Origin: Scyliorhinus canicula
Taxonomy: Eukaryota
Assembly: GCF_902713615.1 (NCBI RefSeq)
Contig: NC_052151.1
Span: 118,516,123 to 118,580,122 of the forward strand
DNA length: 64,000 nt
Direction of reading: 5' to 3'
Both the position numbers and the translations under genes were made by a program. Each line of letters begins with the position of its first letter. The first letter of the stretch is position 1. Of this stretch, positions 2,675 through 64,000 are shown piece by piece. Below the pieces are notes generated by a model. The model made no database searches. It saw nothing but the letters and a program-made list of their open reading frames with translations, and was not told the origin of the DNA.

Positions 2675-5656
2675 TTAATTTGATGACTGGGTGAACAGAG
2701 TTTGATTGAGTTTCCTGTACAGGAACAAGGTGATCAATGAAGCAGAGATCAGAGAGACAGCTGTCACAGTCAGGGTCACGGTCAGGACCACCTCAGACTC
2801 CACACCTACAAACCAATGAGAAGCCAATGGTTAGTGAAGGAAACACTGAGGGGCAAATAGAAACCAGCAGTTAGCCAACTCACCACTTGGGGACCTCTCC
2901 TGCATCCTTCCCTCAATCAGGGAGTCCGTTGCCAGGTTGGTCACATCAGTATCCAGAATGATCAGGGGTCCAAGTGTGGCCTCAGCCTCCCACTTCAATC
3001 CAACTTCACTCTCTGCAATATCAAACATTCCAGTTAGAGAGGGGAAAGGGGAAACGTCCACCATCTAGAGGATCAATGTCCTACCAGCTTCAGCTACAAT
3101 ATCTCTCCTTCCTCTGGATCCAAATCGCAGCTCCCTTGTGGCACAGTTACCCACATGACAACAGGCACAAATGTCAATGCTCGATTCCTCCAATGGGGTC
3201 CAGCTGAGCAAGACAAAAATCAGTCAACAAACTGCATTGTGCATCACTTCACAAAAACCCATCACAGAGAGAGAGAGAGAGAGAGAGCTTACATATTCTG
3301 CATCTTCTGGAAAGTACAAGCTTTGTTCTTGGAATCTCTCCGATCCACTGGAGCCACTTTCAGGTGACAGGTGATGAAGATCTGAGGGAAACATCAACAC
3401 GTTGTTATTTAATGACTCCCTCCCAACACAGACCCCAATGATCAGTTTCCTCTTACCAAGGAACGGTCATCTCCAAAGAAACGGAATGCATCCAGGTCAA
3501 ACCGGAGCTTGTCCATCTCCCGCTCGCCACTTGGCAACACAAAGGTTGAAAAGGAGTCCTCAGCTTGGCTGTCCAGGAGGCAACTGAAGATAGATTAAAA
3601 AGGGACATGAAGTGAATCAAGTGAAGCCAGTGAGATGGGAGCAGCTGGAGAAAGCAGAGAGCTCCTTACCCATTGTAGTCAATAATGCTGTATCTCGGGG
3701 TGGAGTCCTTGTCTGGGCTCAAAGTAGCTACACAGCGGTCAATGTAGAGCTTCAGGGGCATGTGGTTGCTCATTGAAACAGAGGCCTCAATGTGAATGAG
3801 GTCACCCAGGTAGTAGACAGTGGAAGTGCGCTCTGTAAGCCAGTCACCTGAAGAACAAGAGGATAAGGGTTGGAGACAGTGGGTGTCACTCCCAGTGAGT
3901 GAAGACAGGAAATCACTCCCCATCACATACCATTCATTAGGCGCAGAGAGAATGAAAGATGTCCTTCTCCAGACCTGGTGGAGCTGAATGGGATCCAGGT
4001 AGGCCTGATGGGGTTGCTGCTCACATTGCCCTTCCTGGAAAGACAGCAGAGTCATTTTAGGACAACTTCAGAGAACACCAGCAGCTGTGGATCTTATTGG
4101 GCATCAAATAAAGATTCTCACCTAAAGTAACGACACTCAATGGGAACGACAGCTCCATTTGTTCTCACAATGACAGATCCATGATACTCTGGGCTGTGGG
4201 TCAGGTGGGTGGTGTAGATCAGGAAATCTCCAGACATCTGAAAGACATCAGGTTAAGGAATGAAGAACTGATCTGAAATGAGAAAGTTCTACACAGGGGT
4301 TAACAATGAACTCATCCCATCCAATTAAAATAATTCAAGGAGATTGGCAGGGTCAGTGCAAATAGGCTACTGGGCCCCAGCTGGAGAGTTGAGGGAGGGC
4401 AGGGGGAAGGAGGGTCATCTCAGGTCAACAGCCAATCATGACAATGAATTTCTTCATTTAGCAGCTCATGAATTCTCTATCCCAGAAAACTGAGAATGTT
4501 CAGTCACAGGATATTCAGGACAGTGGATTTATTTTTGGACATTAAGGGAATCATGTTGAAGACAGGGATGAGGTTGAGAAAAGTTCAGTCCTGATCTTAA
4601 TGAATGGGGTCCAGCCCTGATCTTAATGATCAGGAAACAGGCTGGAGGGGCTGCATGGCCTCATTTTGTTATTATGTTGTTCAGCAACCCCCAGCCATTT
4701 ATACAAAGAGATCATTAGTACAAGACCAGTATCAATTAATAGGTAACTGATTCAATAAAAGGACAGCTTCAGTTAACAGGAAAAGGTGCCACAAGTTGAC
4801 AACAATATGGAGCCTGGAAATAGAACAGTTTTAATCCAGGGCCCAGGGCCCCATTGATTCCAATGACTGGGAAAGTGGGAAGTGTAGAGTTCCTCTTTGG
4901 TCCAATCCATCTGAATTCCCATTTCATCCTGTTCATTAACACCCAACCCAATTGGATTAAACTGAACCCTCAGTTTGAGTGATGTGAATGAGAGGGAAAT
5001 AGAGCTGAAAATCAACAAGAGGAAAAGCTTGGAGGAACCAAAGAGAATCTTCCAGACCAATGGGGTTGATGTCACAACACTGAAGAGACTCAGATCAGTG
5101 GAAGCAAAGTACAATCCAGAACAGGAAGCTAGTTTGGGGGTTTAAGACATAGAAGACCAGTATCTCCTCTATATCAATGACATCTCACCAAGTGTTGGAA
5201 TAAAGAGTGTAGAACAATCTCCAGCCTAAGCTTAGAGCCAGAGTTGAGGTTTGACATTACCTGCAATTTGCTGCCACACTCATGGAGCCCATAGTCAAAG
5301 AGGACAGTGTGGTTCTGAGAGTAGATCCTGGTTGGCAGACAGCCTGCTGCCCCCAGGGTCAGGTCAGCAGCTTTAATCAGGTGCCTGGTTCCAAATAAAT
5401 CCAGCTGGACCCTGACCAGCAGCTTGTCCTCTGCACACTGCACCACCACAGTCCGCAGCAGAGACACACTTTGACCCTCAGACACACGGAAATGGGAACC
5501 AAAGGGAGGAAGAGGGACTCTCTGAGGCACAGAGGTGGCTTTGACTCTGCTCCATGGAAACCTCTGGCCTCGAAACTGTTGCCAAGTATCAGAGGAACAA
5601 ACAGCTCCAACTAACACCAGCACTGGGAACAAAGCCCTCACTCCAAAATCCCCCAT
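2675..5656 (-). CDS. zp3: Zona pellucida sperm-binding protein 3-like (ZP3/ZPC), copy 1, intact, 9 exons, 462 aa
   Basis: Exons 5656-5261, 4237-4122, 4034-3931, 3847-3670, 3583-3457, 3381-3293, 3203-3085, 3012-2884, 2805-2675. All introns are GT-AG with consistent phases (1389 nt). The product has a signal peptide ([22 protein letters not shown]), ZP-N motifs ([25 protein letters not shown]), ZP-C motifs ([42 protein letters not shown]), the ZP3 cysteine cluster [10 protein letters not shown], a furin-type RGRR site, an EHP-like LGPLIIL and a C-terminal TM segment. Confidence 0.93.
3266..3287. repeat. (GA)n microsatellite in ZP3 intron 6
   Basis: Length varies between copies: long in copies 1 and 3, short in copies 2, 4 and the captured fragment. 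Confidence 0.85.
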
Positions 5657-17745: not shown

Positions 17746-19445
17746 TCACTGGGTGAACAGAGTTTGATTGTGTTTCCTGCACAGGAACAAGGTGATCAAT
17801 GACGCAGAGATCAGAGAGACAGCTGTCACAGTCAGGGTCACGATCAGGACCACCTCAGACTCCACACCTACAAACCAATGAGAAGCCAATGGTTAGTGAA
17901 GGAAACACTGAGGGGCAAATGGAAACCAGCAGTCAGCCAACTCACCACCTGGAGACCTCTCCTGCATCCTTCCCTCATTCACGGAGTCCATTGCCAGGTT
18001 GGTCACATCAGTATCCAGAATGATCAGGGGTCCAAATGAGGCCTCAGCCTCCCACTTCAATCCAACTTCATTCTCTGCAATATCAAACATTCCAGTTAGA
18101 AAGGGGAAAGGGGAAACGTCCACCATCTAGAGGATCAATGTCCTACCAGCTTCAGCTACAAGATCTCTCCTTCCTCTGGATCCAAATCGCAGCTCCCTTG
18201 TGGCACAGTTACCCACACGGCAACAGGCACAAATGTCAATGCTCGATTCCTCCAATGGGGTCCAGCTAAGCAAGACAAATATCAGTCAACCAACTGGGGT
18301 GTGCATCACTTCTCCACAAAAGCCCAGAGAGAGAGAGAGCTTACATATTCTGCATCTTCTGCAAAGTACAAGCTTTGTTCCTGGAATCTCTCCGATTCAC
18401 TGGAGCTACTTTCAAGTGACAGGTGATGAAAATCTGAGGGAAACATCAACACGTTGTTATTTAATGACTCCCTCCCAACACGAGACCCCAATGATCAGTT
18501 TCGTCTTACCAAGGGACGGTCATCGCCAAAGAAACGGAATGCATCCAGGTCAAACCGGAGCTTGTCCGTCTCCCGCTCGCCACTTGGCAACACAAAGGTT
18601 GAAAAGGAGTCCTCAGCTTGGCTGTCCAGGAGGCAACTGAAGATAGATTAAAAGGGACATGAAGTGAATCAAGTGAAGCCAGTGAGATGGGAGCAGCTGG
18701 AGAAAGCAGAGAGCTCCTTACCCATTGTAGTCAATAATGCTGTATCTCGGGGTAGAATCCTTGTCTGGGCTCAATGTAGCTACACAGCGGTCAATGTAGA
18801 GCTTCAGGGGCATGTGGTTGCTCATTGAAACAGAGGCCTCAATGTGAATGAGGTCACCCAGGTAGTAGACAGTGGAAGTGCGCTCTGTAAGCCAGTCACC
18901 TGAAGAACAAGAGGACAAGGGTTGGAGACAGTGGGTGTCACTCCCAGTGAGTGAAGACAGGAAATCACTCCCCATCACATACCATTCATTAGGCGCAGAG
19001 AGAATGAAAGATGTCCTTCTCCAGACCTGGTGGAGCTGAATGGGATCCAGGTAGGCCTGATGGGGTTACTGCTCACATTGCCCTTCCTGGAAAGACAGCA
19101 GAGTCATTTTAGGACAACTTCAGAGAACATCAGCAGCTGTGGATCTTATTGGGCATCCAATAAAGATTCTCACCTAAAATAACGACACTCGATGGGAACG
19201 ACAGCTCCATTTGTTCTCACAATGACAGATCCATGATACTCTGGGCTGTGGGTCAGGTGGGTGGTGTAGATCAGGAAATCTCCAGACATCTGAAAGACAC
19301 CAGGTTAAGGAATGAAGAACTGATCTGAAATGAGAATGTTCTACACAGGGGTTAGCAATGAACTCATCCCATTCAATTAAAACAATTCAAGGAGATTGGC
19401 AGGGTCAGTGCAAAGAGGCTGCTGAGCCCCAGCTGGAGAGTTGAT

Positions 19446-40544: not shown

Positions 40545-41988
40545 CAGCGCCGGCCCTAGGGATTGCTGGTGCCCCGGGCAAGCTGAACTTCGGCGCCCTT
40601 CGTGGGGGGGGTCGGGTCGGGTCGTGTCGGGTCGGGTCGGGGGGGTCGGGTCGGGTCGGGTCGGGTTGGGGGGGGTCGGGTCGGGGGGGGTNNNNNNNNN
40701 NNNNNNNNNNNNNNNNNNNNNNNNNNNNNNNNNNNNNNNNNNNNNNNNNNNNNNNNNNNNNNNNNNNNNNNNNNNNNNNNNNNNNNNNNNNNNNNNNNNN
40801 NNNNNNNNNNNNNNNNNNNNNNNNNNNNNNNNNNNNNNNNNNNNNNNNNNNNNNNNNNNNNNNNNNNNNNNNNNNNNNNNNNNNNNNNNNNNNNNNNNNN
40901 NNNNNNNNNNNNNNNNNNNNNNNNNNNNNNNNNNNNNNNNNNNNNNNNNNNNNNNNNNNNNNNNNNNNNNNNNNNNNNNNNNNNNNNNNNNNNNNNNNNN
41001 NNNNNNNNNNNNNNNNNNNNNNNNNNNNNNNNNNNNNNNNNNNNNNNNNNNNNNNNNNNNNNNNNNNNNNNNNNNNNNNNNNNNNNNNNNNNNNNNNNNN
41101 NNNNNNNNNNNNNNNNNNNNNNNNNNNNNNNNNNNNNNNNNNNNNNNNNNNNNNNNNNNNNNNNNNNNNNNNNNNNNNNNNNNNNNNNNNNNNNNNNNNN
41201 NNNNNNNNNNNNNNNNNNNNNNNNNNNNNNNNNNNNNNNNNNNNNNCGGGGGGGTCGGGTCGGGGGGGTTGGGTCGCGTCGGGTCGGGGGGGTCGGGTCG
41301 GGTCGGGGGGGTTCGGGTCGGGGGGGTTGGGTCGGGTCGGGGGGGTGGGTCGGATTGGGTCGGGTTGGGTCGGGGGGGTCGGGTCGGGGGGGTCGGGTCG
41401 GGGGGGTCGGGTCGGGTCGGGGGGGGTCGGGTCGGGTCGGGTCGGGGGGGGTCAGGTCGGGTCGGGGGGGGTCGGGTCGGGTCGGGGGGGGTCGGGTCGG
41501 GGGCGGTCGGGTCGGGTCGGGGGGTCGGGTCGGGGGGGTCGGGGGGGTCGGGTCGGGTCGGGGGGGTGGGGTCAGGTCGGGTCGGGTCGGGTGGGGGGGG
41601 TCGGGTCGGGGGGGTCGGGGGGGTTGTGGGGGGTCGGGGGGGTCGGGCCGGGTCGGGGGGGTCGGGTCGGGTCGGGTGGGTCGGGTCGGGTCGGGTTGGG
41701 GGGGGTCGGGTCGGGTCGGGGGGTCGGGGGCGTCGGGTCGGGGGGGGGGTCGGGTCGGGTCGGGGGGGTCGGGTCGGGTCGGGTCGGGTGGGGTCAGGTC
41801 GGGTCGGGGGGGTCGGGTCGGGTCGGGGGGGGGCCGGAGTGTCCTGGTATATGATTGGGACTCACCGATCGGCGGGCCGGTCTCTCTGTCGGCAGGTCTC
41901 TGACGCCGGTCACGCACTCGTTGATGGCGCCCCCTAGCACATGGCGCCCCGGGCGACTGCCCGAGTTGCCGGTACCTTGAGCCGGCCG
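40545..41988. mobile_element. Non-autonomous hAT-type DNA transposon inserted in element A pol
   Basis: 8-bp TSD GGGGTGGC at 40537-40544 and 41989-41996. Imperfect TIRs CAGCGCCGGCCCTAGG / CCTTGAGCCGGCCG. Removing it restores the pol reading KPNATP-MVHAPRR. Confidence 0.8.
40603..41833 (+). repeat. (GGGTC/GnTC) G-rich minisatellite containing an assembly gap
   Basis: Directly visible tandem repeat; N-run at 40692-41246. Confidence 0.95.
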
Positions 41989-42485
41989 GGGGTGGCGTTT
42001 GGTTTCAGCAGGATTTTGTATCGGTATGGGAGCGTGCCCATTCCATCGAACACGCTGTGGTACTGCGTGATGATGTCATCAATTTCAGCCTGGAAGTTTT
42101 CATCAGGTGAGGCCGTCGCCTGTGAGGATGACATGGTGTGGACTCACTGAACCAGGTTCAGGAGTTTGCACCCGAGCACCGAGCACCGAGCAGGGATGCT
42201 CTGTCAGGTCCGACAATCTCAAATTGCAGCGTCGCTTTAAGTGACCTATTGGAAATGCCGAGTTGGCACGAGCCACTGGCAGCAATGGCATTGCCATTGT
42301 AGTCAAGGAGCTGGCAGGCCGGTGGAAGAATGCTGGTCTGACGCGGATAGTGTCGAGATAGGATTTTGAAATGAGGTTCGCTGATGCGCCGGTACCCAGC
42401 TTGAAACGGATGCGGGCCTTGTTGACTGAGGACAGCACGCCACTTGTCATTAGGATCCACGCTTAGGATTGGGAGGTGTTTCACC

Positions 42486-42818
42486 ATAGAACATAGAACA
42501 GTACAGCACAGAACAGGCCCTTCGGCCCTCAATGTTGTGCCGAACAATGATCACCCTACTTTAAACCCATGTAACCCGTATACCCGTAACCCAACAATCC
42601 CCCCATTAACCTTACACTACGGGCAATTTAGCATGGCCAATCCACCTAACCTGCACATCTTTGGACTGTGGGAGGAAACCGGAGCACCCGGAGGAAACCC
42701 ACGCACACACAGGGAGGACGTGCAGACTCCACACAGACAGTGACCCAGCCGGGAATCGAACCTGGGACCCTGGAGCTGTGAAGCATTGATGCTAACCACC
42801 ATGCTACTGTGAGGCCCC
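42486..42818 (-). mobile_element. Well-preserved HE1-like SINE inserted in element A
   Basis: Complete head, core and (catagaa) tail. Removing it restores the host reading KHALPFSKM-VKHLPIL, with a short ccat duplication. Confidence 0.85.
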
Positions 42819-43432
42819 ATCTTTGAGAAAGGCAGCGCATGCTTGGTAATGATGCCTGTGGTGGTATGAATGTGAGCACTGCCATTGGTGCAGAACATGG
42901 GTTTCCCATTGGCTCTGGCTGGTCATGTGCCTCTCGTCCGATTGGCTGGGACTAGTCATGTGACTGCTCATCAATTGGTCGATAGGCAAGTAGACCCCGC
43001 CTCCGAGGCGGGGTATAAGTACCCAGAGTTCCCGGCGGTCGGCCTTTCTCTGTAGTCGACCAGCGGGCTAACAACTAGCTGATTAAAGCCACAGTTTGGA
43101 TCTTAATCGTGTCTCGAGTCCAATTGATGGTACATCAATTTAATCAGCTAGAATTTTGGAATGGAGCTTCGCATCAAGCCTCACTGCCTCCGCACCAGCC
43201 CACATGCTTCAAATGCATCTGCAATCTTTAAACATTGGCAGGCGTGTTTTAATAGCTATCTGACGACTGCAGCCGGCAAGCCCACCATGGAGCAGAAACT
43301 CCACATCCTCCTCTCATGCGTGGGCACAGCGATCTACTCAATGATTGAGGACGACAGCGATTATGATGCGGCCATGGAGATTCCCAAAGGACACTTTCTC
43401 CGGACGGTCAACAAAGTAAACGCACGAAAGTA

Positions 43433-44916
43433 AACATTCTCATTTGAGTTCAGTTTTTCATTCCTTAACCTGGTGCCTTTCAGATGTCTGGAGATTTCCT
43501 GATCTACACCACCCACCTGACCCACAGCCCAGAGTATCATGGATCTGTCATTGTGAGAACAAATGGAGCTGTTGTTCCCATTGAGTGTCGTTACTTTAGG
43601 TGAGAATCTTTATTTGAAGATCCACAGCTGTTAGTGTTCTCTGAAGTTGTCTTAAAATGACTCTGCTGCCTTTCCAGGAAGGGCAATGTGAGCAGTAACC
43701 CCATCAGGCCTACCTGGATCCCATTCAGCTCCACCAGGTCTAGAGAAGGACATCTTTCATTCTCTCTGCGCCTAATGAATGGTATGTGATGGGGAGTGAT
43801 TTCCTGTCTTCACTCACTGGGAGTGACACCCACTGTCTCCAACCCTTATCCTCTTGTTCTTCAGGTGACTGGCTTACAGAGCGCACTTCCACTGTCTACT
43901 ACCTGGGTGACCTCATTCACATTGAGGCCTCTGTTTCAATGAGCAACCACATGCCCCTGAAGCTCTTCATTGACCGCTGTGTAGCTACATTGAACCCAGA
44001 CAAGGACTCCACCCCGAGATACAGCATCATTGACTACAATGGGTAAGGAGCTCTCTGCTTTCTCCAGCTGCTCCCATCTCACTGGCTTCACTTGATTCAC
44101 TTCATGTCCCTTTTTAATCTATCTTCAGTTGCCTCCTGGACAGCCAAGCTGAGGACTCCTTTTCAACCTTTGTGTTGCCAAGTGGCGAGCGGGAGATGGA
44201 CAAGCTCCGGTTTGACCTGGATGCATTCCGTTTCTTTGGAGATGACCGTTCCTTGGTAAGAGGAAATTGATCACTGGGGTCTCTGGGTTGGGAGGGAGTC
44301 ATTAAATAACAACGTGTTGATGTTTCCCTCAGATTTTCATCACCTGTCACCTGAAAGTAGCTCCAGTGGATCGGAGGGATTCCAAGAACAAAGCTTGTAC
44401 TTTCCAGAAGATGCAGAATATGTAAGCTCTCTCTCGGATGGGCTTTTGTGGAGAAGTGATGCACAACCCAGTTGGTTGACTGATTTTTGTCTTGCTTAGC
44501 TGGGCCCAATTGGAGGAATCGAGCATTGATATTTGTGCCTGTTGCCATGTGGGTAACTGTGCCACAAGGGAGCTGCGATTTGGATCCAGAGGAAGGAGAG
44601 ATCTTGTAGCTGAAGCTGGTAGGACATTGATTCTCTAGATGGTGGACGTTTCCCCTTTCCCCTCTCTAACTGTAATGTTTAATATTGCAGAAAATGAAGT
44701 TGGATCGAAGTGGGAGGCTGAGGCCTCACTTGGACCCCTGATCATTCTGGATACTGATGTGACCAACCTGGCAACGGACTCTCTGAATGAGGGAAGGATG
44801 CAGGAGAGGTCCCCAGGTGGTGAGTTGGCTGACTGTGGTTTCTATTTGCCCCTCAGTGTTTCCTTCACTAACCATTGGCTTCTCATTGGTTTGTAGGTGT
44901 GGAGTCTGAGGTGGTC
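43433..44916 (+). pseudogene. zp3: Unspliced ZP3 gene fragment (end of intron 1 to first 20 nt of exon 9) inside the gag of element B
   Basis: Exons 43484-43599, 43678-43781, 43865-44042, 44129-44255, 44333-44421, 44500-44618, 44691-44819, 44897-44916. Lengths match the intact copies and introns are retained. Exon 1 and most of the TM segment are missing. It is flanked on both sides by gag coding sequence. Confidence 0.93.
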
Positions 44917-45106
44917 GCTTACGTTGCTGGCATGCAGTCCCCTTCTATCCGCCAACGATTGCTGGAGAAGAACACCCTCAGCCTAGCTGAGGCACGGACT
45001 CGTGCAACCTCCCTGGAGGTTGCTGACCTGAACGCCCGCGCATACGCCCCCGGCCGCGCAGCAACCCCCTGGACTTCATGGCACGCGCCACCCCCGTCCT
45101 CCGTGG

Positions 45107-45143
<37 letters not shown>

Positions 45144-45522
45144 ACCCCCAAAGCCTGCGCTGCAGGTCACTCTGACAAACTAGCGGGGCCCCGTTGCTAT
45201 TTTTGTGGTCTCTCCAAGCACCCTCGCCCCGCGCTGTCCGGCCCGCTCCGCTCTGTGTAAGAGCTGCGGGAAGAAGGGCCACTACGTAGTGGTCTGCCAG
45301 ACCAAGTCGGTCGCTGCTGTTCCACGCAGCGACCGCGGATCGCCCCCCCCCCCGGGCCCCCCTAGGGCCCAGCGCCGCACACCAACCTCTTCGGCCCGCC
45401 TCCCTGGCCCCCGAACGGCCCCGCGGCCCTCCCGACCCTCGCTCCCAGCTGCCCCGACCGGCCCGCAGACGCCGCTGACACTGCCCCCAGCCGCCATGAG
45501 GTTCCCACGGGCGCCACCTACT

Positions 45523-45655
45523 TGGGCCCCGGACACCATGTGCGGGCCATGGGCGCCGCCATCTTGGGGCCCCGGATCCATGTGCGGGCCCTGGGCGCGG
45601 CCATCTTGGGACCCCGACTCCACGTGCGAGTCCTGGGCGCCGCCATCTTGGGCCA
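45523..45655 (+). repeat. ~42-bp tandem repeat in the gag-protease linker of element B
   Basis: Three copies encoding WAPDTMCGPWAPPS / WGPGSMCGPWARPS / WDPDSTCESWAPPS. Confidence 0.8.
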
Positions 45656-48600
45656 ACACGGAAGGCTCTGCCAGCGATTACTCTGCCACCGAGGAGGATC
45701 TGGAACTCTCACCACGACTTTCTTCCATCACACTCGACCAGTCGCGACCACGCACGCTCGCCAAGACTACGACAACGATCCAGCTCAACGGACACAAAAC
45801 GAGATGCCTGCTGGACACCGGGAGCACGGTAAGTTTCGTCCACCCCAACACGGTAAGACACTGCGCGCTCCCCACCCATCCAGTTAAGCATAAGATTGAA
45901 TTGGCCTCGGGTTCGCACTCCGTCCAAATCACCAGGTGCTGCATAGCGGACCTCACGGTCCAGGTGAGGGTTTTCAAAAACTTCAAACTCCTCATTCTCC
46001 CCCGTCTATGCGCTCCGGCACTCTTGGGCCTGGATTTCCAGTGCAACGTGCAGAGCTTGACCTTTCAATTCGGCGGCCCTATTCCCCCTCTTACTGCTGC
46101 CTCAAACGCTGCCTCGGCTTCTTCTCATATTATGCCCAGTGGGTCCCCAACTACGCCGACAAAGCCCGCCCCCTCATCCAGACCACCTCCTTTCCCCTAT
46201 CGATGGAGGCCCGCCAGGCCTTTAGCTGCATCAAAGCAGATATCGCAACGGCCACGATGCATGCTATCGACGAGCCCCTCCCATTCCAGGTCGAGAGCGA
46301 CGCATCTGACGTAGCTCTGGCGGCCACCCTGAACCAAGCGGGCAGACCCGTGGTCTTCTTCTCACGAACCCTCCACGCTTCCGAAATCCACCATTCCTCG
46401 GTGGAAAAGGAGGCACCGGCCATAGTCGAAGCTGTGCGATACTGGAGGCACTATCTGGCCGGCAGGAGGTTTACCCTCTCACAGACCAACGGTCAGTAGC
46501 TTTCATGTTCGATAATGCACAGAGGGGCAAGATCAAGAACGACAAGATCTTGCGGTGGCGGATCGAATTGTCCACGTACAACTACGATATCTTGTATCGT
46601 CCTGGGAAGCTCAATGAGCCTTCCGATGCCCTATCCCGCGGTACCTGCGCCAGCGCACAGATTGACCGCCTCCGCTCCCTCCACATGGACCTCTGCCATC
46701 CAGGGGTCACCCGTCTTTACCATTTTATTAAGACCCGCAACCTGCCCTACTCCGTTGAGGAAGTCAGGACCGTCACTGGGGACTGCCACGTCTGCGCCGA
46801 GTGCAAACCGCACTTCTACCGCCCCGAACGAGCGCATCTGATCAAGGCGTCCCGCCCCTTCGAACGTCTCAGTATAGACTTCAAGGTTCCCCTCCCCTCC
46901 AACAACCGTAACACATATTTCTTGAGTGTTATCGACGAATACTCCCGCTTCCCTTTTGCCATTCCCTGTCCCGACATGACCACAACAACCGTCACAAAGG
47001 CCCTCCTATCCATCTTCTCCCTGGTCGGTTACCCCGCGTACATCCACAGCGACCGGGGGTCCTCCTTTATGAGTGACGAACTGCGTCAGTTCCTGCTCAG
47101 CAGGGGCATAGCCTCTAGCAGGACGACCAGTTATAACCCCCGGGGTAACGGTAAGGTCAAGCGGGAGAATGGCACCATTTGGAAGACCATCCTGCTGGCC
47201 CTACGGTCCAGAGATCTCCCTATTCCCCGTTGGCAAGAAGTCATCCCCGACGCCCTGCATTCAATCCGGTCTCTCCTCTGTACTACCACTAATCAAACAC
47301 CTCATGAACGTCTTCTTGTTTTCCCCAGGAAGTCGTCCTCAGGATCCCCTCTCCCGACCTGGCTGGCCACCCCCGGGCCCATCTTGCTCCGGAAGCATGT
47401 GCGGGTGCACAAGTCCGACCAGTTGGTCGAGCGAGTCCAGTTACTCCACGCCAACCCGCAGTATGCGTACATGGAGTATCCCGACGGTCGGCAGGATATG
47501 GTCTCACTTCGGGACCTGGCACCCACCGGCGTGCGGCCTTCTCCCCCTACATCAACATCTCCCCACCCAACCCCAATTCCCCCCCAGTGCCCCCTGCGCC
47601 CCCACGACCCAGCGCACATGCCCCCTCGTCTCCACCACCAGCCCGGGGTACGGAGACACATCTACGATCGACGCTCCCAGAGGCAAGGACGGCCATCGGC
47701 CCGACATCACCGGCTCCACTGCGACGGTCCTCCAGAACACCACGGGCACCCGACAGGCTGATCGTCTCCATCTGATGCGACTATGGGACATTTTGGACTT
47801 TGTTGTTATTCTGTTGCACCTTAAGTTGTAGTAGTAGTATTATTTTTTGCCATGAGCCAGTGGGCAGCCCACCTTTCTCGATTTTCGCTGCTCATACCAC
47901 CAGTCCTCGGATCCCCCCCCCCCGCCTCTCTTCCACTTACACCCCCCCCCCCCCCCCCCGGCCTTCTTTCTCCACAAGGGGTGAATGTGGTGGTATTAAT
48001 GTGAGCACTGCCATTGGTGCAGAGCATGGGTTTCCCATTGGCTCTGGCTGGTCATGTGCCTCTCGTCCGATTGGCTGCGACTAGTCATGTGACTGCTCAC
48101 CAATTGGTCGAGAGGCAAGTAGACCCCGCCTCCGAGGCGGGGTACAAGTACCCAGAGTTCCCGGCGGTCGGCCTTTCTCTGTAGTCGACCACCGGGCTAA
48201 CAACTAACTGATTAAAGCCACAGCCAGGCCGGCAGTACCAGGTTCAGGATCCGATGGGCTGTCGGGGTCGGAGTCTGGCACAGCCTGCTGAATCGAACGG
48301 ACGCTCCTGCGCCTTGGCTGGGATCGCTGTGTGCTGGGCAGTGCAGCAGATCTGCAAAGGGTTGCGTAGTGGCCAAGCTTGCCACACTGTAGACACCGTC
48401 GTGATTTTGCCGGATATTGCCGCTTTAAATGGGCGGAGCCAGAATTTGGACACGCCATGACGCCAACGTCAGCGCGTTCTGTACGCCATCGCTCATGCGC
48501 AGTGTGGTTGAATGACGTACGCACCTGCGCAGGCTGGTCGTCGGTCTTGCCGTCCCCTCGGTCGTGGCGCGCATACGCTGGAGCCCAGGAAAAGCTCGGG

Positions 48601-51509
48601 AAATGGCCACTCTCATCAAGACTCAGGCCCTGCATTTGTGCGATTGCCTGCACCCATTCTGCCTCGTGGGGGGGTTAGCTTAGCCATTTCTGCCGCCCTG
48701 ATGTGGGAGAACCGGTTGTTAGCATGCATGTGGAGAACACACGTTTCGATGGCGATGTTGAGGGTGAGCTGCTTGACTTTCAGGAGCTGCTGGTGAAGGG
48801 AATCAGAGTGGACTCCGAAAATGATCTGATCCCGGATCATGGAATCAGTTGTCGAGTCATAGTTAAATGACTGCGCGAGGATGCGGAGATGGGTCAAAAA
48901 GGATTGAAAAGGTTCATCCTTATCCTGAAGCCTCTGCTGGAAAACGTACCGTTCAAAGCTCTCATTCACCTCAATGTCGCAGTGGCTGTCGAATTTCAGC
49001 AGGACTGTTTTAAATTTCGTCTTGTCTCCGCCTTCAGCGAATGTAAGGGAGTTGTAGATGTGGATGGCGTGGTCCCCCGCTGTGGAGAGGAATAGTGCGA
49101 TCTTCCTGGCGTCCGATGCGGCTTCGAGGTCGGTGGCTTCAAGATAGAGTTCGAACTTCTGTTTGAAGATCTTCCAATTTGTACCGAGGTTGCCGGCGAT
49201 GCGGAGCTGCGGAGGAGGGCAGACGTTGTCCATGTTACCGGATGGCTGTTTGCTGGTCAATGCCGATTCACTCAAGGTAGGTCCGTCAATTTTCAGCACC
49301 GAACCTGATACCATGATGTGTTGGGTAGGCTGGATTTATGTGGACTCCGTTTGATGCAGTGTAGAGAGAGACAGGCTTCCAACACTTGATGAGATGCAAC
49401 ACGATTTAATTTAACATCTAACTATTTTACATGTTCAACTGTGGGTTGACACTATGCTGACTTGACTGGAGACCTGAGGCTAGCCTGACCAGACTAACTG
49501 ACGACCACATGGTGTTTGCACTAGCTGCTGCTCACGAGCTCTGACTGTCTCAGAGGCTGGATCCTTAGAGCAAGGGAAAAATGGTGCCCTCTGGCTTTAT
49601 AGTGGTTGTGTCCTGTCTGGTGATTTGCTGCTGTGTACTGTGTGTTCACTGGTCATCCTGTGTGTCAATCACTGACTGTCTGCACACCATCATATACCTG
49701 GATGTATATTATGACAAACATCACCACCTGGACGTTCAAACATTTTGAGATCAGAATTGTTGCTCATTGTTTGGACAGCAGGAACTGGTAATAATAGCGC
49801 TGTTGCAATTTACAGCCCATCTTTTGTTTCTTATCCAATTCCGGTCCCCCTTCAACTTGCACCATTGACCCTGCCTTCTAACCTATCACAGACTTTTGTT
49901 CTGTTCTCCCTTCCTCTCCCCACCACCTTAAAACTTGTTATATTCCTAAAGTCTTCCAATTCCCAACGAAAGGTTACCAACCTGAAACATTGACTACGGG
50001 AACAATTCTCCCAAAACATCTCTAAGTGTGTCTCTGGTGGGAACCGAGGTCAATTCCTGCCGGGTGGTTTGGCGCAATGCAGATCGCAATCTATCTACAC
50101 TTAGAATTTTGTTGGGAGGTTGGGGTGAGCTGCAGCCTGATTGAGGGGCGCAGAGCTGAAGACTCCGGCAGGTCCGGCTCCTCCGAGATCGGGGCACCAT
50201 TCATAAAGGAAGATCTGATCTCAGGCAAACGCTCAGCCCCCCACCCCGCCCCATTGCCAGTACCAGCACCCCCCCACGTGAGCGACAGCTCGCTATGGGG
50301 ATGGCCAATGCACCACCTGCATATTCATCACTCTGATCTCCATCACTCTGGCTTCACACTGCGCCGGCGGGTGGGAGAATTCCAGGAGCCAGGAGAATCC
50401 AGCTTAAAACAGATCCTGCATATTTAAATAAGGGTGTTGTGCACAAACCTGGGGCGGGATTCTCCCCTACCCGACGGAGCGGGCTGTCCCGGCGTCAATG
50501 AGTGGCGTGAACTACTCGGGCGTAGGGCCGCCCAGAAGGTGCGGAACCCTCCGCCGACCGGCGCGAGTTAGCGCATGCGCGTGAGTGCCAGCGTTTGCTG
50601 GCATCTTCTCAGTGCATGCGCAGGGTGGTTCTTTTCCGCTCCAGCCATGGCGGAGGTTGACAGCGGCTCATGCGGAGGGAAAGAATGCCCCCACGGCACA
50701 GGCCCGCCAGCGGATCTGTGGGCCCCCATCGCGGACCAGGCCACCGAGGGGGCACCCCCGGGGCCAGGTCCCTCCGCGACCCCCGGAGGACTACGGAGGC
50801 CGCCAGCAGAGCCAGTTCCCGCCGGTAAGTACCAGGTCTAATTTACTCTGGCGGGACCGGCCTACAACAGACAGCTGCACGGCCCATCGCAGGCCGGAGA
50901 ATCGATGGGGGGGGGGGGGGGGGGGGGGGGGGGGCGCAGCGAGCGGCCATCGACCGGCGTAGCACGTTGCCCGCCCCCACCAAAACCCCGGCGCCGGACA
51001 ATTCAGCAGCCGGCGGCGGCGGGATGCACGCTGACCCCTGGCTATTCTCCAGCCCCGTGGGGTTGGAGAATCCCACCCCTGATCACAGCAGCTGGAGCGG
51101 TCAAGGAGCATCGGAAATTGTTTGACACCCGGCGCAAATCCCTTTTCGGGCCTCTCCCGGGATTTTCCCAAGTTCGCAGAATTTGCGCTGGGCGCAATGT
51201 GGCTAGAGAATCGCCCCGCTGTTTCTCTACCGGTGCTGACTAAATATTTCCAGAAATTTCTGTTCATGTTGTACATTTAAGAACTGAACTTGTTCATCAT
51301 TACTGATTTAACTAAATACAAATAACAGACTGATGCTTGAGCAAGATTTCTTTACATGTGCCAGGCATAGGTTGCTGTAAGCACATTGAATCTTGTGGAA
51401 GTTATAATTTGCCTTTTGCAATATTTTTACTACATGGTCATGCAGAAACTTAAACAGCATTTTGTCTCCAGCACAAGTATGTTTAATGCCGTATGTTCAT
51501 GTTTTACAG

Positions 51510-57719: not shown

Positions 57720-60658
57720 TTACTGGGCGAACAGAGTTTGATTCCGTTTCCTGTACAGGAACAAGGTGATCAATGAAGCAGAGATCAGAGAGACAGCTGT
57801 CACAGTCAGGGTCACGATCAGGACCACCTCAGACTCCACACCTACAAACCAATGAGAAACCAATGGTTAGTGAAGGAAACACCAAGGGGGAAATGGAAAC
57901 CAGCAGTCAGCCAACTTACCACCTGGAATCCTCTCCTGCATCGTTCCCTCATTCAGGGAGTTTGTTGCCAGGTTGGTCACATCAGTATCCAGAATGATCA
58001 GGGGTCCAAGTGAGGCCTCAGCCTCCCACTTCAATCCAACTTCACTCTCTGCAATATCAAACATTCCAGTTAGAGAGGGGAAAGGGGAAACCTCCACCAT
58101 CTAGAGAATCAATGTCCTACCAGCTTCAGCTACAATATCTCTCCTTCCTCTGGATCCAAATCTCAGCTCCCTTGTGGCACAGTTACCCACATGGCAACAG
58201 GCACAAATATCAATGCTCGATTCCTCCAATGGGGCCCAGCTAAGCAAGACAAAAATCAGTCAACCAACTGTATTGTGCATCACTTCTCCACAAAAGCCCA
58301 TTTGAGAGAGAGCTTACATATTCTGCATCTTCCTGGAAAGTACAAGCTTTGTTCTTGGAATCTCTCCGATCCACTGGAGCTACTTTCAGGTGGCAGGTGA
58401 TGAAAATCTGAGGGAACCATCAACACGTCGTTATTTAATGACTCCCTCCCAACACAGACCCACAATGATCAGTTTCCTCTTACCAAGGAACGGTCATCTC
58501 CAAAGAAACGGAATGCATCCAGGTCAAACCGGAGCTTGTCCATCTCCCGCTCGCCACTTGGCAACACAAAGGTTGAAAAGGAGTCCTCAGCTTGGCTGTC
58601 CAGGAGGCAACTGAAGACAGATTAAAAAGGGACATGAAGTGAATCAAGTGAAGCCAGTGAGATTGGAGCAGCTGGAGAAAGCAGAGAGCTCCTTACCCAT
58701 TGTAGTCAATAATGCTGTATCTCGGGGTGGAGTCCTTGTCTGGGCTCAATGTAGCTACACAGCGGTCAATGTAGAGCTTCAGGGGCATGTGGTTGCTCAT
58801 TGAAACAGAGGCCTCAATGTGAATGAGGTCACCCAGGTAGTAGACAGTGGAAGTGCGCTCTGTAAGCCAGTCACCTGAAGAACAAGAGGACAAGGGTTGG
58901 AGACAGTGGGTGTCACTCCGTGAGTGAAGAGAGGAAATCACTCCCCATCACATACCATTCATTAGGCGCAGAGAGAATGAAAGATGTCCTTCTCCAGACC
59001 TGGTGGAGCTGAATGGGATCCAGGTAGGCCTGATGGGGTTACTGCTCACATTGCCCTTCCTGGAAAGACAGCAGAGTCATTTTAGGACAACTTCAGAGAA
59101 CACCAACAGCTGTGGATCTTCAAATAAAGATTCTCACCTAAAGTAACGACACTCAATGGGAACAACAGCTCCATTTGTTCTCACAATGACAGATCCATGA
59201 TACTCTGGACTGTGGGTCAGGTGGGTGGTGTAGATCAGGAAATCTCCAGACATCTGAAAGACACCACGTTAAGGAATGAAGAACTGAACTCAAATGAGAA
59301 TGTTCTACACAGGGGTTAACAATGAACTCGCCCCATCCAATTAAAATAATTCAAGGAGATTGGCAGGTTCGGTGCAAATAGGCTACTGGGCCCCAGCTGG
59401 AGTGTCGGGGGGGGGGGGGGAAAGAGTCATCTCAGGTCAGGGGTCAATCATTTAGGATAAACATGATAATGACTTTCTTCATTTAGCAGCTCATGAATTC
59501 TCTATCTCAGAGCTGGGAATGTTCAGTCAGAGGATATTCAGGACAGATGGATTATATTTTTGGACATTAAGGGAATCATGTTGAGGACAAGGGCATGAGG
59601 TTATGGGGAGCCCAGCCCAGATCTTAATGATCAGGGACAGGCTGGAGGGGCTGCATGGCCTCATCTTGTTATTAGTGTTGCTCAGCAACCCCCAGCCATG
59701 TATACAAAGAGATCATTAGACACAAGATCAGGATCAATTAACAGGGAATTCATTCAATAAAGGGACAGCTTCAGTTAACAGGAAAAGGAGCCACAAGTTG
59801 ACAATGATATGGAGCCTGGAAATAGAACAGTTTCAATCCAGGGCCCCATTGATTCCAATGACTGGGAAAGTGGGAAGTGTGGAATTCCTCTTTTTTCCAA
59901 TCCATATGAATTCCCATTTCATTCTGTTCATAAACACCCAACCCAATTGGATTAAACTGGACTGAAACCAAACCCTCAGTTGGATTGATGTGAATGAGGG
60001 GGAAATAGAGCTGAAAAATCAACAAGAGGAAAAGCTCAAGAGGAACAAAAGAGAAGCTTCCAGATCAATGGGGTTGATGTCACAATATTGAAGAGACTCA
60101 GACCAGTGGAAGCAAAGTACAATCAGGGAGCTAGTTTGGGTGTTTAAGACACAGGAGACCAGTATCTCCTCTATATCAATGACATCTCACCAAGTGTTGG
60201 AATAAAGAGTGTGGAACAATCTCCAGCCTAAGCTTAGAGCCAGAGTTGAGGTTTGACATTACCTGCAATTTGCTGCCACACTCATGGAGCCCATAGTCAA
60301 AGAGGACAGTGTGGTTCTGAGAGTAGATCCTGGTTGGCCGACAGCCTGCTGCCCCCAGTGTCAGGTCAGCAGCTTTAATCAGGTGCCTGGTTCCAAATAA
60401 ATCCAGCTGGACCCTGACCAGCAGCTTGTCCTCTGCACACTGCACCATCACAGTCCGCAGCGGAGACACACTTTGACCCTCAGACACACGGAAATGGGAA
60501 CCAAAGGGAGGAAGAGGGACTCTCTGAGGCACAGAGGTGGCTTTGACTCTGCTCCATGGAAACCTTTGGCCTCGAAACTGTTGCCAAGTATCAGAGGAAC
60601 AAACAGCCCCAACTAACACCAGCACTGGGAACAAAGCCCTCACTCCAAAATCCCCCAT
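57720..60658 (-). pseudogene. zp3: ZP3-like copy 4, +1 frameshift in exon 6
   Basis: Exons 60658-60263, 59253-59138, 59059-58956, 58874-58697, 58610-58484, 58407-58318 (90 nt versus 89; extra base ~58332), 58239-58121, 58048-57920, 57841-57720. The shifted frame stops at TGA 58212-58210 in exon 7. Confidence 0.8.
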
Positions 60659-61775: not shown

Positions 61776-64000
61776 TGATGTGACCATCAATTCACGATAC
61801 ACGTGGTTGGAAGTGAACAGTGGTTTTAATAGTCTTACAACTGAGCCTGCCTGCGACGAGATGAACTGGCAGCAGGCTCACAACTGCAGATCTTTATACT
61901 TCCAGTTAGTGGGAGGAGCCATGGGCAGAACCATGGGCGGAGCCACGGGTGGAACCCAGTACAAACTCCTCATCTCCCCCTATGGGCAGATCCGCGCAAC
62001 TGCTCGTATACCGAGCTTACAAAGACACAACACATACAATATAACACAGTGTGAATTGCTCGGATTGTGATTCACCACATTCACCCTCTGTAAAAAATCA
62101 AGTCCAGCGGGGGTGATGGTCTACAAATTGAGTCGGTCCGGCAGTCGAGTCGTCCCCTGAGATCTACGAAGTACCGGGGTTGCAGCCTCTTCTGGTGGCT
62201 GGGTGGTGGCGGTTGGCGAGGGTACCATGGCGGACTCCAGGGGTGATTCGGTCCGAGCTTCGTACCCGAGTGGTTCGACTGGCGACGGGGAGCACCGGAA
62301 ACCCATAGGCGCGGGGGCGCGGAGCACGGACAGTGAACCTGCAGGCGTGGGGGGGACGGGCGCAGGGGTTTGGGTGGGGTGTAGTGTGAGGGGCACCTCG
62401 GCGGTAGTAGTGTCAGAGTTGGATCCTGCAGGTGCCAGGTCCCGGAGGGAAACAGTGTCCTGACGGCCGTCAGGGTATTCGATGAACGCGTATTGGGGGT
62501 TCGAGTGGAGTAGGAGAACTATCTCAACGAGTGGGTCAGTTTTGTGGGTCCGGACGTGCTTCCGAAGAAGAACCGGGCCCAATGTCTTCAACCATGCTGG
62601 GAGCGAAACCCTCGTGGTAGTGCCCCTGGAAAAAACAAATAGCCGCTCGTGAGGGGTCTGATTGGTGGCTGTGCATAGGAGGGACCTAATAGCATGGAGC
62701 GCGTCGGGGAGGACCTCCTGCCAATGGGAGCTCGAGAGATTCCTGGACCGGAGGGTCATTGGACGGTCTTCCAGACCGTCGCGTTCTCCCTCTCCACCTG
62801 CCCGTTCCCCCTGGGGTTGTAGCTGGTAGTCCTGCTCGAGGCGATGCCCTTGTCGAGCAGGTACTGACGCAGCTCGTCGCTCATGAAGGACGAACCCTTG
62901 TCGCTGTGTACATAGTTGGGGAAACTAAACAGGGTGAAGATGCTGTGCAGGGCTCTAATGACTGTGTGGGAGGTCATATCGGGGCACGGGATAGCAAAGG
63001 GGAAGCGGGAGAACTCGTCTATGACGTTTAGGAAGTCCACATTCTGATTGGTCGAGGGGAGTGGCCCTTTGAAATCGATGCTCAGGCGTTCAAAGGGCCG
63101 GGAGGCCTTGACCAGGTGGGCCCTGTCTGGTCTATAGAAGTGCGGTTTGCACTCCGCACAGATCGGGCAATCCCTGGTGATGGCTTTTACCTCCTCGGTG
63201 GAGAAAGGCAGATTTCGGGCTTTGACGTAGTGTGCGAGCCGGGTAACCCCCGGGTGGCAGAGGTCACTGTGGATAGCTTTCAGGCGGTCGTCTTGCGCGC
63301 TGGCGCACGTGCCGCGGGACAGGGCATCTGTGGGCTTGTTGAGCTTCCCCGGTCGATACATAATATCGTACTTGTAGGTGGAGAGTTCGATCCTCCACCG
63401 TAGGATCTTATCGTTTTTAATTTTGCCCCTTTGTGAGTTGTCAAACATAAAGGCAACTAATCTTTGGTCGGTGATGAGGGTGAACCTCCTACCTGCGAGG
63501 TAGTGTCTCCAGTGACGTAAAGCTTCCACGATGGCTTGTGCTTCCTTTTCGACCGAGGTGTGTCGGAGTTCTGAAGCAGAGAGGGTTCGGGAGAAAAAGG
63601 CGACTGGTCTCCCTGCCTGATTTAGTGTGGCTGCAAGAGCTACCTCTGAGGCATCGCTCTCTACCTGGAAAGGGACGGATTCATCCACCGCCCGCATGGC
63701 CACTTTGGCGATGTCCTCCTTGATGCAGGTGAAGGCCTGGCGAGCCTCATCTGATAGAGGAAAGAGTGTGGCCTTAAATAGGGACTCACTGGACATAATA
63801 CGAGAAAAACCCCAGGCACCTTTTGAGGGTCCTGGGACAATGAGGGAGAGGGAGAGGGAGTTGGCATACGTTCCGGGTCGGGGCCCAGAACTCCGTTTTC
63901 TACGACATAGCCGAGGATGGCTAGCCTGGTCGTGCGGAAAACGCATTTCTCCGTGTTATACATGAGGTTGAGTTTCTGGGCACCCTGGAGAAATCGATGG
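61776..64000 (-). mobile_element. Element C: Ty3/Gypsy related to B, 3' part only (RT end, RNase H, integrase, 3' LTR 61776-62079)
   Basis: ORFs 62756-63946 and 62121-62759 closely resemble the RNase H and integrase of B, with a frameshift at ~62759. The LTR termini TGTGGTG...GATGGTCACATCA and the GGGTGAA purine tract match those of B. It runs off the window end. Confidence 0.9.

Follow-up and report, generated by a model that had tools for sequence, protein, structure and literature searches.

We analysed a 64,000-nt stretch of the Scyliorhinus canicula genome (assembly GCF_902713615.1, contig NC_052151.1, positions 118,516,123-118,580,122 of the forward strand; hereinafter designated the window, in whose positions all coordinates are given). 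The window contains a tandem array of ZP3 genes on the minus strand, with a unit of ~15.1 kb and four copies (c1 to c4), and, in the array spacer between c3 and c4 and inverted to both, a long terminal repeat (LTR) retrotransposon (hereinafter designated element B) whose gag gene harbors a genomic fragment of ZP3 with its introns retained (Table 1). The captured exons are open and their frame runs on into Gag, forming a chimera that is probably dead and in frame only by accident.

Element B is a defective Ty3/Gypsy-type LTR retrotransposon. The order of features between its LTRs (gag, CCHC knuckle, aspartic protease, RNase H and integrase) is that of Ty3/Gypsy elements, and the two LTRs differ at 8 of 238 positions, half of this divergence being 0.0168. 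The protease and RNase H matches are only ~170 nt apart; the reverse transcriptase (RT) core is therefore gone, and the lineage of B cannot be placed by RT. A reading of the locus made from the DNA letters and the open reading frames (ORFs) alone (hereinafter the sequence-only reading) had described the rest of B as broken, and the lack of room for an RT core, together with two frame changes in gag, agrees with that description. In the 5′ LTR there are several boxes of CCAAT type and one GC box, and the TATAAG at 43013-43018 is intact, a combination that makes a promoter plausible. The end of the same LTR (43075-43087, CTAGCTGATTAAA) and the segment before the gag ATG (43138-43150, TTTAATCAGCTAG) form a perfect 13-nt inverted repeat, with which any transcript starting in the LTR would form a stem in its leader.

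The ZP3 fragment is undamaged over its whole length. Its exons measure 116, 104, 178, 127, 89, 119, 129 and 20 nt, amounting to 882 nt, and each has the same length as in the four array copies. All acceptors are AG, all internal donors are GT, and exon-wise translation meets zero stops; the six codons split by introns specify R, G, G, I, E and G, none of them a stop. Frames were checked by arithmetic, by exon-wise translation and by scripted per-position codon bookkeeping, and the translation bears out the earlier claim that the captured exons keep their lengths, GT-AG sites and open 882-nt frame, with exon 2 starting on an ATG. Among structures, the exon 4 product matches chicken ZP3 (3NK3, 7.6e-19) and human ZP3 (8BQU, 7.5e-17) far ahead of ZP2 (0.011), and by this comparison the captured piece is classed as ZP3-type, with the ZP-C domain of the ZP3 subfamily.

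The fragment lacks both ends of the gene. In the array copies, exon 1 lies ~1 kb upstream of exon 2 and encodes the signal peptide together with a ZP-N portion aligning to chicken ZP3 residues 4-68, and exon 9 runs into the membrane anchor and then a stop. ZP-N is incomplete in the fragment, where the cysteine of the PIECRY motif is the only one left of the four conserved in that domain, and the cysteines of the fragment as a whole number nine, an odd count. The fragment stops at 44916, after 20 nt of exon 9 and just ahead of the codons for the membrane anchor, as the sequence-only reading had stated in placing the break at the start of the transmembrane segment. A 54-nt intron starting at 43430 was considered as intron 1 and ruled out by the array copies, which show an unrelated intron upstream of the junction and exon 1 ~1 kb away.

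The sequences flanking the fragment belong to a single gag gene. An exhaustive library search with the N-terminal Gag piece returned 82 relatives, the best of which come from the cloudy catshark Scyliorhinus torazame, are labelled 'uncharacterized proteins' in RefSeq and continue into two CCHC knuckles and a protease motif. Aligned with one such Gag-protease protein (P0001), the N-terminal piece covers residues 1-89 at 52% identity, and the piece beyond the ZP3 junction matches residues 135-190 at 54% identity (E = 3e-17), which places the ZP3 fragment at residues 90-134. Because the two pieces map to these intervals, 1,484 nt of ZP3 took the place of ~45 codons of the capsid-like gag core, and the event is, on this alignment, a replacement and not a simple insertion. 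Neither a Pfam search of both Gag pieces nor BLASTP of both against the gag of the neighbouring element C gave a match or a significant hit, respectively, so the Gag identity comes from the library search. A word-index protein search with the junction ORF (44875-45180) found no match, and one with P0001 residues 1-89 found P0001 itself only; the tool has length and word limits, and a blank from it is no proof of absence. Further into B, at 45509-45652, three diverged tandem repeats of ~84 nt encode ...MCGPWAPPSWGP..., and the same repeats occur in the S. torazame Gag-protease relatives.

At the 3′ junction, position 44916 is the last base of a codon of exon 9 (VESEVV), and the frame goes on as AYVAGMQSP... 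for 88 codons to a TAG at 45181-45183; the junction sequence of the chimera is GAGGTGGTC-GCTTAC. The sequence-only reading had all 88 codons running in Gag. The frame is indeed open to the TAG, but comparison with a second relative (P0009) shows ~62 of the 88 codons to be in the authentic Gag frame, the remainder being poly-proline and ten off-frame codons. The last ~26 codons of the chimeric frame are thus off-frame, poly-proline junk, with frame loss ~190 nt past the junction. The gag frame of B is lost in or after the run of 36 C and regained near 45235, and the first zinc knuckle lies between, in another frame.

The closest relative of the fragment is the adjacent array copy c4. Identity of 43433-44916 to the four copies is 94-96%; the fragment shares a 9-nt intron deletion with c4, and in the tree it is sister to that copy (support 81/84). 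The terminal branch of the fragment (0.016) equals half the LTR divergence within error, suggesting that the capture is about as old as the insertion of B. Frameshifts are present in c3 (exon 1) and in c4 (exon 6), and decay is therefore ordinary in this array. In exon 6 of c4, at ~58333, an additional G that the other four copies lack (ACTTTCCAGGAAG vs ACTTTCCAGAAG) shifts the frame of an otherwise intact gene, marking either a pseudogene or an assembly slip. In exon 1 of c3 (35384-35900, minus strand) the match is one nucleotide longer than normal (397 vs 396 nt), the parts encoding signal peptide and ZP-N are in different frames, and start and leader appear to be lost.

We consider it probable (roughly 0.7) that the chimera is dead, that it is in frame by accident, and that templated repair of DNA inside the ZP3 array produced it. 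A break in the gag of B would have been repaired by copying 1.48 kb of genomic DNA from the neighbouring, oppositely oriented ZP3 copy, in a templated or microhomology-mediated mode, and ~135 nt of gag would have been lost meanwhile. From the anatomy we infer DNA-level repair from a neighbouring paralogue, as opposed to retroposition, because all seven introns and part of intron 1 are kept, the fragment lies inverted inside its parental array, it is sister to the neighbouring copy c4, and homology at the junctions is minimal. Microsimilarity at the 5′ junction does not exceed 3 nt (GTA, with a 1-nt discrepancy), and at the 3′ junction it does not exceed 1-2 nt; both values are ambiguous.

An unlikely alternative places the capture at the RNA level: RT in a virus-like particle would have jumped from the RNA of B to a fully unspliced ZP3 pre-mRNA packaged alongside it and then returned, and the product would have integrated afterwards, as in LTR-mediated retroposition. 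The architecture of that class, with both LTRs present, part of an element ORF replaced and the insert in sense (PMC5131818), is what B displays, and the match between fragment branch length and half the LTR divergence is as expected if capture and integration were one event. The known class, however, carries spliced copies, whereas here seven introns and part of intron 1 are retained, which would call for packaging of a fully unspliced pre-mRNA; landing in the parental array beside its closest relative c4 would be a large coincidence; and the microsimilarity of at most ~3 nt, itself ambiguous, falls short of the class median of 6 bp.

The intactness of the captured exons is not evidence of selection. 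The fragment carries 9 private exon substitutions and 10 private intron substitutions; private variants occur, for example, at 43742, 43967, 43994, 44508 and 44706. The nine exon changes divide into 5 nonsynonymous and 4 synonymous (p = 0.26 against a neutral nonsynonymous share of 0.74), no different from the 15:11 of the array copies (Fisher p = 1), and exon and intron substitution rates do not differ (p = 0.35), although with this little change neither kind of test has power. A comparison of nonsynonymous and synonymous change with the array copies had been put forward by the sequence-only reading as a check for constraint; it returns no signal of selection, though at so little change it has no power. 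In simulations of substitutions alone, with 19-25 random changes placed in the 1,484 nt, 47% and 38% of the cases retained an intact frame together with all 30 splice-dinucleotide positions, and four of the five copies compared are open over the same exons. We therefore detect no constraint on the captured exons, which are still open because the copy has taken only ~1-1.6% change. The in-frame look of the chimera is likewise ascribed to chance, since sense orientation has odds of 1 in 2 and an in-frame 3′ join odds of 1 in 3, the latter as already reckoned by the sequence-only reading; an in-phase GT within 255 nt of gag is unremarkable. The accompanying proposal that a recent insertion explains the intactness is favoured by the simulations and the constraint tests, with 'recent' tempered to about the age of the element's insertion.

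For the chimera to be read from an LTR-started transcript, the Gag N-terminus would have to be joined to exon 2. Exactly 85 codons run from the gag ATG (43161) to position 43415, and the weak phase-0 donor AAA/GTAAAC at 43415/43416, noted in the sequence-only reading along with its 68-nt intron, is indeed there and in phase with exon 2. An identical 9-mer lies 14 nt downstream at 43430, out of frame, and a third weak candidate, ATG/GTACAT at 43130, would also give an in-frame join to exon 2. The donor at 43415/43416 has a log-odds score of 4.25 compared with 6.2-9.4 for the seven native donors, scores from an approximate position table, not from MaxEntScan, of which the ranking against the native donors alone is reliable. 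It lacks G at -1 and at +5, whereas all seven native donors carry G at +5.

In an unspliced LTR-started transcript, translation would end at the TAA at 43431-43433. Spliced introns located 3′ of a stop codon mark an RNA for nonsense-mediated decay, and with seven spliced introns downstream of this TAA the RNA would be a predicted target. A transcript spliced via the weak donor would encode a cytosolic protein of ~467 aa that lacks both signal peptide and anchor, retains one third of ZP-N, has a cysteine without a partner, includes a broken capsid-like Gag and ends in a junk tail. Gag supplies no hydrophobic leader, because its first 30 residues peak at a hydropathy of 0.47 compared with 2.77 for the leader of array exon 1, and one cysteine of the product would be left unpaired because the fragment has nine. 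Going by what is known of ZP modules, which are extracellular and rich in disulfides, one made in the cytosol would probably fail to fold, and the predicted fusion product looks unworkable. The proposal of a ZP/Gag fusion without signal peptide and membrane segment is a real structural possibility, but its product is unpromising, its donor is weak and no constraint on it is detected.

The fragment could also act without being translated. As a transcribed non-coding sequence, the inverted 1.5-kb copy would pair with ZP3 RNA in read-through transcripts and feed small-RNA pathways, or it would promote inversions of the array, a reading that we hold to be very unlikely. The fragment does form a 94-96% inverted repeat with c3 and c4, on the opposite strand and in a transposon-dense spacer; however, it lies 9-13 kb from the array genes, so pairing would take read-through of 9-13 kb, and the sequence demands nothing of the kind. 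Equally small is the chance that a germline-active 5′ LTR drives a spliced plus-strand RNA that would be translated as a cytosolic Gag-ZP-C fusion or, more plausibly, would act as RNA on the ZP3 array as a small-RNA source or decoy. Were LTR-driven RNA to run through the ZP3 exons in this way, a family of egg-coat genes would be regulated by a gene fragment carried on a transposon.

A working LTR-driven gene, in which a transcript from the 5′ LTR is spliced from the donor at 43416 (or from ATG/GT at 43130) to exon 2 and yields a useful Gag-ZP3-Gag or ZP3-Gag protein in the oocyte, is highly improbable. The open 882-nt frame with every splice site kept, the in-frame 3′ join, the two in-phase candidate donors, the intact TATA box of the 5′ LTR, the confinement of private indels to introns (two, vs zero in exons) and the S. 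torazame gene models with a Gag N-terminal first exon would all suit it. Its product, however, would be without signal peptide, anchor, two thirds of ZP-N and three of the four ZP-N cysteines, an extracellular module left in the cytosol; the capsid-like Gag core is deleted and the tail off-frame; the donor lacks the G at -1 and +5, unlike the native donors, and has an identical out-of-frame twin; and no constraint signal accompanies an intactness that has a chance probability of ~0.4 under substitutions. Least likely of all is an assembly artefact, a ZP3 piece misjoined into the element during assembly of the repetitive array: a gap 1.6 kb upstream (Ns 40692-41246), a long homopolymer tract and repeated 15-kb units would favour a misjoin, but the two junctions fall 45 codons apart in the same gag gene, on sequence that is continuous, and with its 19 private substitutions and 2 private indels the fragment cannot be a read misplaced from one of the copies in the window.

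Several observations weigh against a dead chimera made by repair. The TATA box is intact in the 5′ LTR only, the 3′ LTR having TACAAG. At the flanks of the LTRs, a search for a target-site duplication of 4-6 nt gave no match, and the possible duplication of 3 nt (GCC) that is shared when the LTR is taken as TG...CA is unconvincing. The two indels private to the fragment fall in its 602 nt of intron and none falls in its 882 nt of exon, for which a naive P(0) is 0.05-0.23; the exons being free of private indels is a mild hint of constraint that hangs on one or two events, and one of the two indels lies in a TC repeat. Finally, the RefSeq models of the S. torazame NEMP1a-like isoforms X1 and X2 (XP_072334470.1 and XP_072334480.1; P0083 and P0004) start with 100 residues of the Gag family of B, which stand in place of the signal-peptide exon. 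This start looks like a transposon-initiated alternative first exon and suggests that the Gag N-terminus of the family can join host exons, at least in gene models.

An unrelated LTR-type element on the minus strand hosts B, and parts of this second element lie on either side of it. This host element is cut off by a G-rich simple repeat and the 555-N assembly gap at 40692-41246, 1.6 kb upstream of B. Close to the window end, a further element has its integrase region at 62121-63764 (minus strand); this region has 73% DNA identity to the integrase of B and runs toward the boundary.

Table 1 Features of element B, its captured ZP3 fragment and the surrounding array (positions in the window)
Feature	Position	Strand	Remarks
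5′ LTR of element B	42857-43094	+	TG...CA(G); 230/238 identity to 47986-48223
Gag N-terminal piece	43161-43433	+	89 authentic codons, then K and TAA stop if unspliced
Hypothetical 68-nt intron	43416-43483	+	weak donor AAA/GTAAAC to native exon 2 acceptor, phase 0
ZP3 genomic fragment	43433-44916	+	last 51 nt of intron 1, exons 2-8, seven introns, first 20 nt of exon 9
ZP3 exon 2	43484-43599	+	end of ZP-N, holds the fourth conserved cysteine only; weak ZP-N Pfam match (E = 0.021)
ZP3 exon 3	43678-43781	+	
ZP3 exon 4 (ZP-C)	43865-44042	+	Pfam ZP-C 1.6e-12
ZP3 exon 5	44129-44255	+	
ZP3 exon 6	44333-44421	+	
ZP3 exon 7	44500-44618	+	four cysteines; RGRR furin-type site (by reading)
ZP3 exon 8	44691-44819	+	hydrophobic patch LGPLIIL (by reading)
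ZP3 exon 9, first 20 nt	44897-44916	+	cut just before membrane-anchor codons
Gag C-side piece	44917-45183	+	in frame with exon 9; authentic Gag to ~45100, then poly-C and off-frame codons to TAG
Poly-C tract (36 C, A, 5 C)	45108-45149	+	gag reading frame lost here; 36-C run at 45108-45143
Gag zinc knuckle and aspartic protease of B	45205-46314	+	Pfam gag-asp_proteas 3.8e-12; zf-CCHC_2 weak
RNase H and integrase ORFs of B	45936-47761	+	Pfam RT_RNaseH_2 4.7e-21, rve 2.9e-19
3′ LTR of element B	47986-48223	+	
Array copy c1	2786-4288	-	
Array copy c2	17848-19340	-	
Array copy c3	32928-34433	-	
Array copy c4	57822-59304	-	closest relative of the fragment, likely donor lineage; 96.3% identity
Host element, protease and RT start, left of B	41934-42547	-	
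tRNA-derived short interspersed nuclear element	~42600-42830		between left part of host element and B
Host element, gag and zinc knuckle, right of B	48224-49314	-	

If the chimera arose by repair, an in-frame, splice-competent fusion of transposon and gene can come about by accident, and DNA repair would be a route to chimeras of the LTR-element/host type. An open frame in a copy with ~1.5% change is no evidence of function. Host fragments in LTR elements are already known, as reverse-transcription products that as a rule have no introns; the new feature here is a host fragment inside gag with its introns retained. Should the fusion be expressed, it would count among the rare vertebrate examples of exons shuffled into the frame of Gag, the exons in this case coming from a rapidly evolving family of egg-coat genes.

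Chimeras made by LTR-mediated retroposition in animals contain inserts derived from spliced mRNA, with exon-exon junctions and a median microsimilarity of 6 bp (Tan et al. 2016, Genome Res, PMC5131818); they are reported to be co-transcribed from the LTR, and maize Bs1 is reported to make a hybrid protein (PMC5131818). Like them, the ZP3 insert lies in sense between two LTRs and replaces part of an element ORF (Gag residues 90-134), and a joint Gag-host frame is possible. Unlike them, it keeps seven introns and part of intron 1, is collinear with the genomic array copies, sits inside the parental gene array beside its closest relative, and shows a junction similarity of at most ~3 nt.

In the Gag-onc fusions of acutely transforming retroviruses, such as Gag-Abl and Gag-Myc, an N-terminal part of Gag is joined in frame to a truncated host gene in an LTR-driven, replication-defective genome. 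The chimera in B resembles them in combining an N-terminal Gag piece and a truncated host gene, in a fused frame that is predicted here, within a replication-defective LTR element. Gag-onc genes, however, are intronless, expressed and selected for a dominant activity, whereas the ZP3 insert keeps its introns and encodes an extracellular module without a secretion signal.

The NEMP1a-like isoforms of S. torazame share with the chimera the same Gag family at the N-terminus, where, in the gene model, it forms a coding exon replacing the signal-peptide exon of the host gene. They differ in that their Gag part runs to residue 100 (...QLPG), a position within the segment deleted from B, and in that their host gene is a separate gene downstream, whereas the host part in B is a fragment inside the element.

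Products of templated-insertion or microhomology-mediated repair carry filler DNA copied from a nearby locus. The chimera in B is like them in its anatomy, from which the mechanism is read: ~135 nt were deleted, a 1.48-kb copy of nearby genomic DNA was put in their place, the copy is inverted relative to its source, and homology at the junctions is minimal.

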